Numbered from the stretch's first letter, positions 31,017-41,408 are shown. The stretch is DNA of 64,000 nt from Trichosphaerium sp. ATCC 40318 (GCA_038496445.1 JALMLS010000421.1:124001-188000), one strand, 5' to 3'. A program made the numbers and translations. The notes: a model not told the origin generated them from the sequence alone.

Positions 31017-31991
31017 CTATTCAAAAGTGCCCTGTATCAATTGATGACCTTTGTAATCCCATTTCATGCACTCTCCGTCAACGTTTCCATTGACATAGTT
31101 ACACTGTTTCCACAACTGGCCATTTTCATGCCAATGCTTTGCCTCTCCTTCAAGTTTTCCATTTACATAGTTACACTTTTTCCATAGCTGGCCATTTTCG
31201 TGCCAATGCTTTGATTCTCCCTCAAATTTACCATTTACATAGCTGCAGTGATGTTTGAGTTGGCCATTGTAATGATACTCCTTGTACTCTCCTTCGTATT
31301 TACCATTGATATAGTTGCATTGTGTGTTCAAAATACCGTTAAAATCCCATGACTTGTACTCTCCATGTTTTATACCATTCAAGTAATTAGCTTGAATCAT
31401 AAATTGCCCATTATCATACCAATACTTTTGCTCCCCGGCTTGCGAACCATTCACATAATAGATCTGACGCATCAATTGATCATTGTCATACCAATACTTG
31501 CTTTCTCCTTCTTGTATACCATTTACATAGTAGCTCTTCTCTTTCAATTGTCCACATTCATACCAACGCGTGATTTCTTCTTGTTTATCTTTACCATTGA
31601 TGTAATTCGATAACTGCTTTAATTGGCCATGGATATACCAAGTCTTATACTCTCCATCACGTTCACCATTGATGTAGGTACCTTGTGATTCTACCTGACC
31701 AAAAGTACTATACCTAAACCAAGATTTGAACTCTCCATGACGCTCACCATGGCTCCAACACTCCTGACAAAAAACTTTGGTGATACCTCTTTGTTGCCAT
31801 TTTCCATGCTTTTTCATATCACCATCAAACCTTGTCATTGTCGCTGTGGTTTTAGACAGAAGCGGCCATATTAAATAGGTTGATGCGTCCAAATCAATAA
31901 TATCAAGCTGAATCTCAACTGGAAGCTGTAATAGACGACACTCGTCTAATTCTATTGCTAATATCTCTTCATTACTTGATACAATGCTCAT
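31017..31991 (-). CDS. Intronless F-box-like + MORN-variant (MORN_2/YwqK-type) repeat protein
   Basis: LLQLPVEIQLDII F-box start, then about 9 repeats of 24 aa (GEYKxWYxNGQLxxxxxYVNG). Confidence 0.85.
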   Translation of the reverse strand: MSIVSSNEEILAIELDECRLLQLPVEIQLDIIDLDASTYLIWPLLSKTTATMTRFDGDMKKHGKWQQRGITKVFCQECWSHGERHGEFKSWFRYSTFGQVESQGTYINGERDGEYKTWYIHGQLKQLSNYINGKDKQEEITRWYECGQLKEKSYYVNGIQEGESKYWYDNDQLMRQIYYVNGSQAGEQKYWYDNGQFMIQANYLNGIKHGEYKSWDFNGILNTQCNYINGKYEGEYKEYHYNGQLKHHCSYVNGKFEGESKHWHENGQLWKKCNYVNGKLEGEAKHWHENGQLWKQCNYVNGNVDGECMKWDYKGHQLIQGTFE

Positions 31992-33603: not shown

Positions 33604-34434
33604 ATGTCAGCACAGCAAGTTCTATGCTTACTCGTAGTTCTATTCTGCGTTCACAACGCAATTGCGCATTCGTATCTATTCGACGACCCAATGCCTTTCA
33701 GTAAGGGCAGTAAAGGACGCGGAGGATGCCGTGTTGATAATATTAAAGGCACAGGAAGGACTTGTAGAGGTCCTTGTGAGGATTACGACGACGTAACCTT
33801 TGAGGTCACCAAAACTTACAAACGTGGCCAAAAATACAAGTACAACTGGGCTAGAAACAACCACAAACACGGTTACGTAAGAGTAGCTATCGTACCTTGG
33901 GAGTACAAGAACAAAGCATCTGAGTACCATCAGTACGCTATCGCCTACGATTGCTTCGCGGGATCGACTATCACATCAAAGAAGTGTCCAGGTCATAAAC
34001 ATTTCCTTCGATGTAAGCAAGACAAGCAAGGAAAAGGTGTTTACTACGAGTCAGAGTTTACTTTCCCAACTTCTATCCCTGATGGTGAATATATCTTCCA
34101 ATGGACTTGGTTCGGTGGTTCTGATAAAGGAGACTACTACAGTTGTGCTAGTATTCGCGTTCAAGGAGGTGCTCAACTCACTTCGTCTTTCCCTGTTATG
34201 AAAAAGACATGTGATACAAGATCAACAAGAGTTGGACAATGTAAGTATGCTCGTCCTTGCGCAAACGAAAAAGGAGTAGAACAAAAGCACCAAGTTGTTC
34301 AAAAGCTTGATTCCAAAGAATACAATGAAAAGAACAAGCCTCTCGTTCTTGCAAGCAGATATGGCGCAAACCCAATGAACAACGGTGGAAACAATAACAA
34401 CAATCCACCACCTCCACCTCCACCTCCACCAATG

Positions 34435-34475
<41 letters not shown>

Positions 34476-35414
34476 CGGAAATTTCGACCATGAAGCTCCT
34501 GGAACAATTCAAGCTCAGGATTTCTCAGATTTCAGCGACAAAACAGCCGGAAACAGCGGTACAGTTTCTTTTTTTATTCTTCGTTTTTGTTGATACAAGT
34601 TGTATTCTGACAGTGTGTAGGCGGTGACTCTTGTGCAGCTAACAACCATGGTTCCTCTCGCCTTGTAGATTTACAAGAAACCAGTGATATCGGTGGTGAT
34701 TGCAACATCGGTTGGGTTAAGTCTGGTGAATGGGTTGAATACGAAGTTGACTTTACAGAAGAGGCTGAATATGAAATTGATTTCCGTGTCTCTGCAAAAG
34801 GTTCAGCCACAAAACGTATCACAGTCGAAATAGATGGAGATTCCAGAAACTTAGAGCTAAAAGCTACAGATGGATGGGGTAAATGGGAGACACAAACCGT
34901 TGTCTTTGGTAAGGTAGACGAAGGAGATCACGCTGTTAAAATTACCTTCAAAACCGACGAGATCAACGTCAACTACATGACATTCAAAGTCAAAGGAGAC
35001 AACAACAACAACAATAACTGCCCCGGAAAACGTTCTCTCTCTTCGTACGTGTTTTATTTTTCGGGTTTTTTCTACTTTTTTTTGACTTGCTTTCTTGTCG
35101 TATTAACTTGACCCTGTACTCACTTTTGTTCTTTTAGTGATGCTGTGATTGTACAAGAATCCGCTAAATTGACAAGAGGCGCTTCAAACGATGTAATGAT
35201 CAAGTACTTCGCCGAGGAAGACAGTGTTCTACAAGTAACTTTGTGGAATGACTGGACACGTGTTGTTTCTGGTGAAACTCGTGTTGCTGCTGGTAGCGCT
35301 GCTGCTAATGTAACTCTTGCTGTACCTGAGTTTAAACAAACTGAGAATGTATTTATGACCACACAAATGTACCCTTTGAGCCGCTCTGAGGAGACTAAAG
35401 TCATATTAAACTAA
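33604..35414 (+). CDS. Secreted LPMO-like (His-brace) copper protein + Pro/Asn linker + CBM6 + C-terminal beta-domain
   Basis: Predicted signal cleavage after HNAIA leaves His at mature position 1. Second His in WARNNH; YIFQWTWFGG...DYYSC. CBM6-like APGTIQAQDF...NIGWVKSGEWVEYEVDF...FRVSA...NVNYMTF. Confidence 0.75.
34385..34476 (+). repeat. (AAC)n and (CCA/CCT)n coding microsatellites (poly-Asn/poly-Pro linker)
   Basis: aacaacaac... run of about 14 codons and a ccacctccacct run. Confidence 0.9.
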
Positions 35415-35804: not shown

Positions 35805-38800
35805 ATGTTTCGGCAATTCGCTATTGGCTTGTTAGTTACTACTCTATTGTGCTTATGCCAATGCCAAACGCCAGCAGAGGAAGTAATCTTGAGTCAAATA
35901 GCAGAAGCATTTAATTACAACGAAACAATAACTTGTGAGTAGAAAGCGAAAACGCTACATCGAAGGTACTGTACACGCGCTCTTTTCTTCCTGCGAATTC
36001 TTTGAAAATACGAGGATAAAAAACAAAATAAATTAATCACGTGATGAGTAGTCACCTTTGTTGTAGGCTGAGTGTAATAGCGAAAATAAGGTGACTTCAT
36101 TGTACGTCAGTGCTAATTTTTTTTTTACGTCACGTGTTTTTTCTCTTCTTTTGCTTATAATCCCCTTAAGAACGCTTACACTGTTCGCGACTACTACAAG
36201 TAGGCCTATATTCGTAATCCCTATCGCCATTGAAGGATTAGTCTATTTATCGCAGCTGTACGCTACATGATGATGTTTACGCCCGAATAGGCAAACAACT
36301 ACGATACAAAAAAGGCGGCCTTGTTTTTTTTTTTTTTTCAAACCTTCCCATAATTGCGGGATAGCGAAATCGCCTCCTCGTATCTAGATGGCACAAGCAT
36401 AAAGGTATTATCAAAGCTACCTTCTCTTCGTAAATTGTACGTAATGGTGTCAAACGACAACAGTTTTGCACTGACATTTCCATGAGAAATCTCAACAACC
36501 CCATCAATTTTTCTAACCATTCCCTAGGTCTTTTTCACATGTTACATTCTTTGGTCCTACAATCATAGACCTAAGCGACCTGCCCGACATTGGTTCACCA
36601 CCAACTTCTCAACCAACTTCAAACCTACAAGTCCTCCTGTGGCTCCAACTAACGCGTCAGGACTGGCGTGCGTCAAAAAAAAAACCAGAAGCTGACTTCT
36701 GACCTCACCAAAAACTAGTTCCGAAAAAACAAAACGAGGTGTCGGTGTTGGGATACGCGAGCTGTACGCACGAGTTTGTTTTTTCTCATTAATCATTCTC
36801 TAATTATGCACAGAACTTTTTTTGACTGCGGTTTAACAACCTTACCTCTTACCTCGTCGTCACCTTTCCTTGAAGTACTGTTCGTAATAATTATTTATGA
36901 AGAAAAAAATTATGCTAACTTTTCTTCACAGGGATATTACCGCTAATCATATTAATGCATTGCCTTCTACCATTGATTTTCCGTCATTAAGGGTAAGAAG
37001 GTTTTTATTAACCATAGTTCGTTATTGTATAACACGTGTTAGGCGTTGTACATGGAAGAAAATACTTTTGAAGCGTTTCCAAACCAAGTTTTGGCTTTAA
37101 CTTCTTTGGAGATACTGTACGTCAAATAATCACGTTTCAAATCACGTGATTTGATTCGACTCACCTTTAAATAAGAGATATACAAAGAAATGCGATGACG
37201 GGTAGCTTACCTTCAATGGGTAGTCTAACAGCGTTAAAAAGCTTGTATCCAGTATTTTTTTTAATGCATCATGCATTTCTAAGATCTTTTTTAACTCTCA
37301 AGGAACCTACAATTTAATAGCCTCACATCGTCAATACCTTCTTCATTCTCGCTGATGACGTCTCTAGAGCGCGTGTAAGTGACCTTTATAACATACAATG
37401 AGCGTAACATACTGTAGTGTTCTTAACGACAACCAATTAACCGGAACAATTGATATGTTTTCTGATCTTCCGAACTTGGTAGAATTATCTCTTGTTAATA
37501 ATCAGCTTGATGGACCAATACCACGCTTTGAGTCAACACAATTAGAGATATTGTACGTTAATTTATAAATGTACGGTCATCCATTGCAGAAATATTTACA
37601 AATACAAGGCGTCTAACAAGGAACAACTTCGATAGTATTATGGATGGCTTTGATAGGATGGACAATCTACTCATCATGTACGTGGATCCTCCTTTGTTAA
37701 TACTTAAAGCAGCCATTCTTAGAACCTTTTGCAGCCGTAGGTTTTGCAATACAAGTTGTTTTGTCTTCGTGTCATTAGTTTGTTTGTAACTTTTCTTTAG
37801 TGATTTAGAAGGTAACAAAATAAAATCTCCGTTTCCAATCTCAGTAACAACACATGTAAACCTAACCTATGTGTACGATGCCATTGTTATTTAATCTATT
37901 TATTAAACGCTTATAGAAACCTTCGCAACAATTCTATTTACGGGGAGTTACCTCAAAACTTTGCTTCAAATCTTGGACAAAGCAATAAACTGGTTTATTT
38001 GTACGTACACAGAATATCACGTGTGTTTTTTGACTCACGTGATTTATTCATAGCGATATTGGTCGTAACAACATGACTGGTAACTTGACGTTGCAGTCAT
38101 GGGAGATGATTAATATGACTTCTGGGAGCCTTGTACTGGATTTTAACAAGTTCAGTGGAGAAGTACCGCTTGGTATTTTAAAGACTGGAGCAAAACTTGT
38201 TTATTTGAACAATAACTTACTTGATGATATATTATTACCTCCCTTTGATGAATTAGCAGCAAACATGGCAGTAATAGACTTGAGTGGTAATGATGTTGGT
38301 GGAAGTTTGAGTATGTTTAACTTTTTTTTTGTTCAGTATCAGCCTTGAACGTTAACTGTTTTACAGCTTTCTTGAAAAATATTTCAAGAAGAGATCTACA
38401 ATTGTACGATACTTGCTTAGAAAATTACATTAATGAAAATGTCATTTTTTTTCTAAAATCACGTGATAGCTAGCTAGGTGTACTTTAGTTGTTTTTTTTG
38501 TTTTCACTTTTTTCTTACATTTTTTTAAGGCGACTTGTGGAAACACCAATATGTTGTCCGTTCAACTTTTCAGATGGCGATATACCGTACATATCAATGC
38601 CACAACAATGTTCAGGTATTATACATACATTAAATTAAAAGCATTTGCATAGAAGTACGGTGTTTGACTTCCTGGGTTTTTTTAGGTTGTTTTGAAATAG
38701 AAGGGCGCTTTGGACATAACTGCAAGTGTGAAAGACCTCTGCCTCCTTTCGAGGTATGTGAACTCTAAGTTGAGCGTGTATTTAAAGTATTCTGTAGGGT

Positions 38801-40240: not shown

Positions 40241-40493
40241 ACTGTATTCAATTGGCTCAAATTAACACAATAATACACAGCTATTAAAAACATGTGCCAT
40301 GATGTGTCATGCAATGATAAGAATTTCCTGTTTTTACCTTTGGTAAATCACGTGATTTCTGGCAGTTGTACTCTGAAATCAAGACAACCTCCATCATTAA
40401 TTTAGATCAGTGAAAATTCTCTTACTTAAGCCCACGTGTTTAGTCCAACACTTCAGTGAGCTTAAATACAATCAAACACGTACACCTTCTTTG

Positions 40494-41408
40494 ATGTCGT
40501 CAAAGTCACACCGCTTCCCCACGCACAAGATTGAAACTCCACAGCTACCGCCAGAGACATTGACGCATATTCTACGTTGTTTAGACAAAAATGATCGTAT
40601 TGCTGCTTCTACAGTCTCTCACATCTTCAACGATATCATTCGTCATAATATAGGATTTGATAATATCAAAATAACAGCTGTACAAGACTGCAACGTTCTT
40701 AAAGGCAGTCCATTGCTTAAAAACACAACAATCAAATGCCGAGCAAAGATTTTCTATCCAGCTGACTCTTTGGCTTGTCTTTCTGGTGTTCATACAATAG
40801 ACCTTCAACATACCTCGATAGACGATGAAGGTATCCTCGCATTAACAAAGGATGCGGATCACAACATTCATAGCATTAACTTGTCCTTTACTGGTGTAAC
40901 AGACGTGTCTTTAAAGGCACTGAGTGGTGTACACACGATCAACATACAGAGCTGTCAGTATATCACAGTTGAAGGCATAAAGGCATTAAAAGAAGTACAT
41001 ACAATACATCTAAAGAACCCTCCAGATTCTTGGTTGAAACATCTTAGCAATGTACATTCAGTTCATATTTCATTCCGTAAAATGTCAGATGAAGGTCTCA
41101 AGTCATTGATAAATGTAAAACACCTTTCATTATACTATTGTGATAATGTCAGAGACTCTGGTCTAAAACACTTGGTCAATCTTGAGTATCTTGGTGCTTT
41201 TGACTGTAACTCTAAATTTGGTGATTGTCTCAAATTTACATTCGACTGTTTAAAGCACATGAAGTCGCTCAAACACACTGACATTCACAGCAGTGGTTTT
41301 TTTACAATACAAGACCTTCAAAAATTGGATATAACTTGGGTACTAGTGAACTCCAATGGTAAGATATATCGATCCTCTAAATTCAAGAAAAGTCAGCACT
41401 GTAAATAA
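40494..41408 (+). CDS. Intronless F-box/LRR (FBXL-like) protein
   Basis: LPPETLTHILRCLDKNDRIAASTVSHIF F-box; LRRs such as LSGVHTIDLQHTSIDDEGI and VTDVSLKALSGVHTINI. Confidence 0.85.
   Translation: MSSKSHRFPTHKIETPQLPPETLTHILRCLDKNDRIAASTVSHIFNDIIRHNIGFDNIKITAVQDCNVLKGSPLLKNTTIKCRAKIFYPADSLACLSGVHTIDLQHTSIDDEGILALTKDADHNIHSINLSFTGVTDVSLKALSGVHTINIQSCQYITVEGIKALKEVHTIHLKNPPDSWLKHLSNVHSVHISFRKMSDEGLKSLINVKHLSLYYCDNVRDSGLKHLVNLEYLGAFDCNSKFGDCLKFTFDCLKHMKSLKHTDIHSSGFFTIQDLQKLDITWVLVNSNGKIYRSSKFKKSQHCK

Follow-up and report, generated by a model that had tools for sequence, protein, structure and literature searches.

To our knowledge, each new LPMO family (AA11 and AA13 to AA17) has broadened both the known substrates and the range of polysaccharide-oxidising organisms, and we know of little work on the carbohydrate biology of amoeboid predators, early-diverging fungi and giant viruses. 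Most AA10 members carry Phe at the axial position, and AA9 and AA11 have a Glu or Gln two residues ahead of the axial Tyr that tunes the reactivity of their copper. AA16 is a proposed H2O2-producing oxidase that supports other enzymes, and AA18 is a bacterial copper enzyme without the LPMO fold. For AA11, a structural paper from 2025 identified the copper ligands of AfAA11B, with His61 as the second brace histidine and Tyr141 as the axial tyrosine (PMC12186267). According to the same paper, AA11 is defined by a Tyr-Glu second sphere (Glu139-x-Tyr141 in AfAA11B), which is unique to this family (PMC12186267). AA15 is a eukaryotic non-fungal family, reports of which span several clades of life (PMC5823890). 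Histidine-brace LPMO-like proteins without polysaccharide activity, such as X325/Bim1, have also been documented (PMC7924993; PMC12186267), and an AA18 family is mentioned in PMC13431639, which cites Santos 2025.

In this study, we analyzed a gene of Trichosphaerium sp. ATCC 40318 within a DNA stretch of 64,000 nt (the window, to which all positions refer), where an initial annotation had noted an LPMO-like domain at 33604-34200. The encoded protein is probably a secreted copper LPMO that belongs to an unclassified family and is targeted by a CBM6 module.

Gene structure and transcript evidence

The gene consists of three exons on the forward strand (33604-34558, 34621-35044 and 35138-35414), which sum to 1656 nt and encode a product of 551 aa (551 codons, no internal stops). 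The uninterrupted ORF from the ATG at 33604 is 329 aa long and represents only the first exon; the gene ends at 35414, two introns beyond the extent first annotated. Pfam, PDB and fold searches were made exon by exon, and the joined exons were used for checking the frame, length and stops.

The order of domains is signal peptide, LPMO-like domain, poly-Asn/Pro linker, CBM6 and Ig-like tail. The signal peptide (21 aa; 33604-33666, +) begins at the first ATG after a stop, with predicted cleavage between AIA and HSY. The LPMO-like catalytic-type domain (33667-34260, +) is defined by 372 relatives, invariant residues and an AF2 model, and the low-complexity linker that follows it (34261-34482, +) shows poly-Pro and poly-Asn runs in the translation. 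A putative first strand of the CBM6 (..GTIQAQDF..) was read from the sequence at the end of exon 1 (34483-34558, +), while exon 2 (34621-35044, +) holds the CBM6 body, identified as Pfam CBM_6 (PF03422), together with a short Asn-rich linker. Exon 3 (35138-35414, +) encodes the 91-aa C-terminal module, an Ig-like beta-sandwich in its AF2 model, and ends with a TAA stop at 35412-35414.

Both introns are of the GT..AG type. Intron 1 (34559-34620, +; 62 nt, phase 1) has its GT at 34559 and its AG at 34619-34620 and restores the frame into the CBM6; it is predicted from the frame, the splice consensus and the continuity of the CBM6. A protein made without splicing of this intron would stop at 34593 and lose the CBM6. 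Intron 1 adjoins the poly-Asn repeat, and contig coverage from the two public runs, X1 and X2, is absent over 34214-34584. Of the two splices, that of intron 2 (35045-35137, +; 93 nt, phase 2) is confirmed, because contigs of both runs carry the exact joint 35044->35138, in which the 93 nt with GT..AG ends are skipped. One X2 contig joins 34832-35044 to 35138-35385. The gene is therefore transcribed and processed. X1 and X2 are two small runs of one sample, whose contigs are 95-100% identical to the locus.

Some further observations were made on these runs and on the linker. Within 33856-35165, 17 listed positions distinguish the run contigs from the window (95-99% identity), and intron 2 occurs in the runs in both spliced and unspliced form. 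The data suggest that the contigs come from a related strain or allele and that the library mixes RNA with pre-mRNA or DNA. The linker-coding region at 34380-34480 contains a proline run of (CCA/CCT) codons and a long asparagine run, the latter encoded by an (AAC)n repeat at ~34437-34477; 34400-34484 was masked as a repeat in read mapping.

As for the surroundings, a MORN-repeat ORF (31017-31991, -; Pfam E 3e-32) and an ORF with F-box and leucine-rich repeats (40410-41408, +) were observed. No carbohydrate-enzyme cluster was found around the gene, the neighbouring long ORFs being unrelated to carbohydrate metabolism, and tblastn detected no paralogue within the window. A short exon (35805-35940) begins with an ATG ~390 nt past the stop, encodes a signal-peptide-like start, MFRQFAIGLLVTTLLCLCQCQ, and ends at a GTGAGT donor-like site; another secreted protein probably starts with this exon.

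Signal peptide and N-terminal histidine

The ORF from ATG 33604 encodes MSAQQVLCLLVVLFCVHNAIA, followed by HSYLFDDP, and the codon of His22 (CAT, 33667-33669) stands directly behind the signal segment. The best 8-residue Kyte-Doolittle mean of this segment is 3.8, and Ala occupies both -3 and -1. The context AIA/H, located after the hydrophobic core, obeys the -3/-1 rule, and His22 is predicted to become residue 1 of the mature protein. A signal peptide followed by His is the signature requirement of the histidine brace. The initial annotation had placed a His directly behind the predicted signal peptide and made its reading depend on cleavage exposing that His; the codon position, the hydrophobic core and the predicted site between AIA and HSY bear out both points.

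The same His forms domain position 1 in all 90 full-length relatives. It is found at residue 15-45 of a Met-started protein in 71 relatives, and in every one of these 71 a hydrophobic core is present, position -1 is A/G/S/C/T and position -3 is small or aliphatic. This recurrence of a signal peptide and then His in the relatives indicates that the arrangement has been kept by evolution throughout the family.

Of the relatives whose invariant His lies deeper, 11 were read (P0047, P0011, P0113, P0035, P0013, P0072, P0083, P0028, P0081, P0054 and P0059); their His is 57-190 residues into the predicted protein, and each of them has an internal Met and a signal-like stretch just upstream of the His. 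The idea of an extra upstream domain in these proteins was rejected in view of the internal Met and signal peptide and of the Pfam result, which was blank for the five upstream parts scanned. These relatives may represent over-extended gene calls.

Conserved motifs of the LPMO-like domain

An exhaustive HMMER search against 1.84 billion representatives identified 372 relatives at E<=0.001, including 144 at E<=1e-10; the best relative had an E value of 1.3e-28 and 38% identity. It was through this exhaustive search of representatives that the family came to light, and not through a word-indexed protein search, which returned one match from the single protein and 15 from a 56-sequence alignment. 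Conservation was then read from a 91-sequence alignment composed of the window protein and the 90 relatives covering the whole domain.

The three motifs reported initially (CxGPC, WARNNH and DYYSC) were all found at the positions first noted. CRGPC corresponds to mature residues 33-37, WARNNH contains His66 (codon 33862-33864), and DYYSC extends from D156 to C160 and contains Tyr157 (codon 34135-34137). In the 91-sequence alignment, H1, C37, R53, H66, G69, P134, G140 and G150 are invariant. N64, D156, C21, C33, C96, C107 and C160 are each kept in at least 87 of the 91 sequences (Asp156 in 87), and N65 is Asn in 80. Position 157 is occupied by Tyr in 79 sequences and by Phe in eight, that is, by one of the two in 87/91. 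At position 155, where the window protein has Gly, the alignment shows G in 53, A in 16, P in 12 and S in 6 of the 91 sequences. The family consensus reads HS(F/Y)L..P ... CR.G ... C.GPC ... RG ... W.RNNH.GGFVR..LVP in the N-terminal part, and PDG.YVL.W.W(Y/F)GG ... FGDY.SC ... I.GG in the later part. Judged from the sequences, this motif set is far beyond chance and highly non-random: the domain has 372 relatives, and His1 and His66 are invariant in the 91-sequence alignment.

The LPMO-like domain has ten Cys in all, including those of a conserved Cys-rich C-terminal extension. Because this extension (P.F..G ... C ... G.C...PC) follows the core, we place the domain end at ~34260; the earlier boundary at 34200 had cut the conserved region short by three further conserved Cys.

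CBM6 and C-terminal module

Exon 2 matches Pfam CBM_6 (PF03422) with an E value of 4.9e-19 and a score of 69.3 bits, compared with a cut-off of 28.9, over profile positions 5-124 of 125. CBM_35_2 is also matched in Pfam (E 1.9e-14), and CBM6 modules of the PDB match exon 2 with E values from 2.8e-16 to 1.6e-7. The Pfam CBM_6 match itself starts in exon 2, and by analogy with the usual N-terminal strand of CBM6 modules, the end of exon 1 (34483-34558) may provide the first strand. The presence of a fused CBM6 above the Pfam cut-off points to an action on polysaccharide. Extra modules are rare: of the 151 relatives scanned, three carry CBM18, one carries CBM19 and two carry ricin-type lectins; a CBM6 was found in none of the 151.

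No Pfam, NCBIfam or PDB sequence match was found for the tail module (35138-35411). A single-sequence AF2 model of its 91 aa (pLDDT 78) gives a beta-sandwich with five strands, for which the fold search revealed a weak resemblance to the porphyran-binding CBM 8wae (TM 0.72, E 9e-3) and the Atlas a lead to a macroglobulin-type domain (0.86). Based on the model, the tail appears to be an Ig-like module. The C-terminus of the protein is polar (..EETKVILN), and a hydrophobic GPI-type tail is absent.

Predicted structure

The AlphaFold2 model obtained with the 91-sequence alignment is a confident beta-sandwich (mean pLDDT 84.5, pTM 0.85). In a Foldseek search of the PDB, the leading matches were LPMOs (AA11, AA9, AA16 and AA10), with TM <=0.54. 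When the model was compared with 48,161 representative chains by VIA-align, the top 23 rows were all LPMOs or LPMO-like proteins (Z 8.4-13.1); unrelated sandwiches start at Z 7.3, and CBMs and Ig-like domains are found at Z 6-7. Realignment over the Foldseek top 1000 agrees with this result, as the top 50 were again LPMOs or LPMO-like proteins. The assignment of the modelled domain to the LPMO fold is firm and unambiguous.

The first rank in VIA-align is held by AA11 7p3u (Z 13.1, 144 residues aligned, rmsd 3.0), with AA11 4mai at Z 11.5, and AA15 5msz reaches Z 12.5 (rmsd 2.6 over 138 aligned residues); differences of less than one Z unit were treated as ties. These are followed by AA10 4oy7 at Z 11.2 (AA10 range 9-11), AA13 4opb at 11.1, the X325 protein LaX325 (6ibh) at 10.1, AA9 at 8.4-10.1, AA16 7ze9 at 9.5 and AA14 5no7 at 8.6. 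Since the top rows are ties, no described family clearly claims the domain. All LPMO alignments begin at model residue 1 and at the N-terminus of the mature enzyme, and the AA11 matches are the only ones aligned out to model residue 183. The structural identity is 19-24% for AA11, 14% for AA15 and 8-15% for AA10/AA13. In the ESM Atlas, the nearest shape belongs to a cluster of 64 mainly zoopagomycotan proteins with no Pfam match (TM 0.75), followed by ascomycete clusters that are named 'Chitin-binding type-4' and also lack Pfam (0.66).

Sequence relation to described LPMO families

Pfam and NCBIfam gave no usable match for the LPMO-like domain, the best being DUF7136 at E 0.031. All significant PDB sequence matches of the protein by phmmer are AA11 chains (9exj, E 2.4e-5; 4mah, 2e-4; 7p3u, 9.6e-4), and the best of these matches spans the C-terminal third. 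The family profile also matches AA11 in the PDB, with E values of 9.7e-6, 4.8e-5 and 5.9e-5 and a score of ~29 bits, the best match spanning positions 32-179; AA9 chains appear from E 4.5e-4 and match by the C-terminal motif only. The profile alignment places His66 on His61 of AfAA11B (His60 of AoAA11) and Tyr157 on Tyr141 (Tyr140 of AoAA11). The Glu that defines AA11 is replaced by Gly155, giving Gly-Asp-Tyr, and because of this replacement we have not filed the domain under AA11. The initial annotation saw no fit to AA11; even with this Glu absent, that statement was too strong, because the sequence similarity to AA11 is weak and yet significant (E 2.4e-5 with the protein and ~1e-5 with the profile).

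With regard to the other families, the window protein has no match to AA9 (Pfam PF03443) at E<=10, and weak AA9 Pfam matches occur in 12 of the 151 relatives scanned (best E 3e-7). Neither the window protein nor any of these 151 relatives matches AA10 (Pfam PF03067, LPMO_10); one distant Catenaria relative is labelled 'Chitin-binding type-4 domain-containing' in UniProt. Chains of AA13, AA14, AA15 and AA16 are absent at E<=10 from both PDB sequence searches, and X325 (BIM1-like, Pfam PF20238) gave no Pfam match. The Atlas feature search returned a BIM1-like cluster at 0.87 and prokaryotic clusters of the 'SCE4755 family polysaccharide monooxygenase' at 0.92. A full-text literature search found no paper for the latter name and no published description of the LPMO-like family. 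The family comparison took in AA9, AA10, AA11, AA13 to AA16 and X325.

The proposal that the domain represents an uncharacterised LPMO-like clade, and not a standard described AA family, agrees well with these data: the domain has an LPMO fold, Pfam and NCBIfam contain no match for it, no single AA family is ahead, and it scores as no standard AA family. By sequence, the relatives would form a large family that is neither described nor classified and is distantly allied to AA11.

Distribution in protists, fungi and giant viruses

Members of the family annotated as hypothetical proteins are known from Basidiobolus ranarum, Catenaria anguillulae and Paraphysoderma sedebokerense, and most of the remaining ones derive from eukaryote-like assemblies. 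In addition, a search with an 11-sequence alignment detected clear homologues in three IMG/VR giant-virus loci (L004:2914-3906; L005, with the same match; L006:517-1527). Two of the viral contigs are 472 kb and 412 kb in length, and one is labelled GVMAG. In the homologues of L004 and L006, a signal peptide precedes His1, RNNHIGGF is present, and the D-F-x-S-C motif places Phe in the axial position. The two peptide patterns used matched nothing in 185,579 bacterial and archaeal genomes, a weak negative result that distant prokaryotic relatives, such as the SCE4755 clusters named above, could escape.

A quick maximum-likelihood tree unites the viral sequences with those of the named fungi in one supported clade (SH-aLRT 95), in which the viral homologues group with the members from Blastocladiomycota and Basidiobolus. 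The window protein forms a long unplaced branch beside this clade (1.15 vs a median of 0.41) and, because of its branch length, may be functionally diverged. The clade had been assigned to a protist, and it is indeed present in the source protist; the restriction implied by this assignment does not hold, as members also occur in Basidiobolus, Catenaria, Paraphysoderma and giant-virus contigs.

Discussion

The product of this gene is very likely a histidine-brace copper protein with an LPMO fold, and on balance we expect it to be a true polysaccharide-cleaving LPMO. Its copper binding, redox catalysis and substrate are what we infer from the features described above. Signal peptidase would cut behind Ala21, making His22 residue 1. 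One copper ion would then be bound in a histidine brace formed by His66 and by the imidazole and amino group of His1, with Tyr157 at the axial position. Upon reduction, the copper would react with H2O2 or O2, leading to oxidation of the polysaccharide glycosidic bond at C1 or C4. The CBM6 would keep the enzyme on its polysaccharide, most likely a beta-glucan, a xylan-type or another non-crystalline glycan, and the Ig-like tail could serve either for spacing or for additional binding. Asn64, Asn65 and Asp156, all nearly invariant, would contribute to a second coordination sphere distinct from the ones in AA9, AA10 and AA11.

The domain might instead be a very divergent member of AA11. The mechanism would then be the same, the substrate would likely be chitin or chito-oligomers, and the difference would be one of classification only. 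In favour of this, no PDB sequences other than AA11 chains reach E<1e-4, they have top Z scores of 13.1, 12.3 and 11.7, their alignments alone extend to model residue 183, both copper-site residues align, and a few relatives carry the chitin-binding modules CBM18 or CBM19. However, the identity is just 19-24% and the profile score ~29 bits, AA15 is tied at Z 12.5, and AA9 is close behind in the profile search (E 4.5e-4 onwards). The CRxGG...CxGPC and RNNHxGGFVR segments have no AA11 counterpart in the alignment, and the Glu139-x-Tyr141 of AA11 (PMC12186267) is met here by Gly-Asp-Tyr, with G/A/P/S instead of Glu in 87/91 sequences. Membership of AA11 is, in our view, quite unlikely.

Two further readings concern the activity rather than the family. 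In the main alternative, an LPMO-like copper protein that does not cleave polysaccharide could serve in copper acquisition, as in X325/Bim1, or as an H2O2-producing oxidase of the AA16 type. The polysaccharide target indicated by the fused CBM6 and by chitin-binding modules in 4 of the 151 relatives argues against such a role, as do the lack of a Pfam BIM1-like match and of a GPI-type tail and the X325 score, which is below those of AA11, AA15, AA10 and AA13; yet LaX325 (Z 10.1) and an AA16 LPMO-like protein (Z 9.5) are among the structural matches, the canonical second-sphere Glu/Gln position is Gly, and the nearly invariant Asp156 beside the Tyr could be an extra copper ligand. We regard this role as unlikely. 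A role without metal, in carbohydrate binding or as a structural wall protein that has retained an LPMO-like beta-sandwich, is highly improbable. While the beta-sandwich is common to many binding modules, and CBMs and Ig-like domains do appear at Z 6-7, one would hardly expect His1 and His66 to be conserved in 91/91 sequences, along with Tyr/Phe157, if there were no metal site, and the top structural matches are all copper proteins.

We therefore return to the secreted, CBM6-targeted copper LPMO as the preferred reading. The combination of the LPMO-like domain and CBM6 makes this protein a credible candidate for a new LPMO family. It is conceivable, though we put it forward only tentatively, that this is a new AA family common to amoeboid protists, Zoopagomycota, Blastocladiomycota and giant viruses, with an Asn-Asn-His/Gly-Asp-Tyr second sphere unlike that of AA9, AA10 and AA11, and that the present member with its CBM6 acts on a substrate other than crystalline chitin or cellulose, e.g. 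a beta-glucan, xylan or an algal or bacterial glycan met in predation.

The family comprises hundreds of sequence clusters and has neither a Pfam model nor a solved structure. If active, its members would offer a new copper-site variant with which the second-sphere tuning of LPMO chemistry can be probed, as well as a possible enzyme for prey-wall digestion or cyst-wall remodelling in protists. They would also be the second case, after the entomopoxvirus fusolins, of LPMO-type proteins in large DNA viruses. The CBM6 fusion provides a direct experimental handle on the substrate.

Comparison with known systems

The protein shares with X325/Bim1 the LPMO-like fold (Z 10.1) and an N-terminal His brace, which is putative here. 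It differs in the presence of a CBM6, a larger core and a different disulfide pattern, and it has no GPI-type C-terminus. The fold is also that of AA10 and AA13, including the entomopoxvirus fusolins (Z ~10-11). Phe157, found in 8/91 sequences and in both giant-virus homologues read, is a further likeness to AA10, and the encoding of members by large DNA viruses is one to the fusolins. In contrast to AA10/AA13, an LPMO_10 match is absent, and the identity is 8-15%.

AA15, represented by TdAA15A of Thermobia domestica (5msz), resembles the present domain in its structural score, which is tied with that of AA11, and in having His1 and an axial Tyr. Unlike in the case of AA11, sequence similarity to AA15 is not detectable, the identity is 14%, and the alignment ends at model residue 168.

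The AA11 structures compared (AoAA11, 4mah/4mai; AfAA11A, 7p3u; AfAA11B, 9exj/9hdg) are those of fungal, chitin-active enzymes. The present domain has in common with them the beta-sandwich (Z 11.5-13.1), a His1 after the signal peptide, and an aligned second His and axial Tyr; moreover, W-T-W-F occurs in both, Y-x-x-C-A follows from the Tyr, and the C-terminal extension aligns. On the other hand, the second-sphere Glu of AA11 is replaced in the present family by Gly, followed by a conserved Asp, and the second His is preceded by Asn-Asn here (Asn-Asn-His) whereas the aligned AA11 chains have Ala-x-His. The present family also possesses an extra N-terminal CRxGG...CxGPC disulfide region, and its hosts are protists, early-diverging fungi and giant-virus contigs, the member in the window being one with a CBM6.
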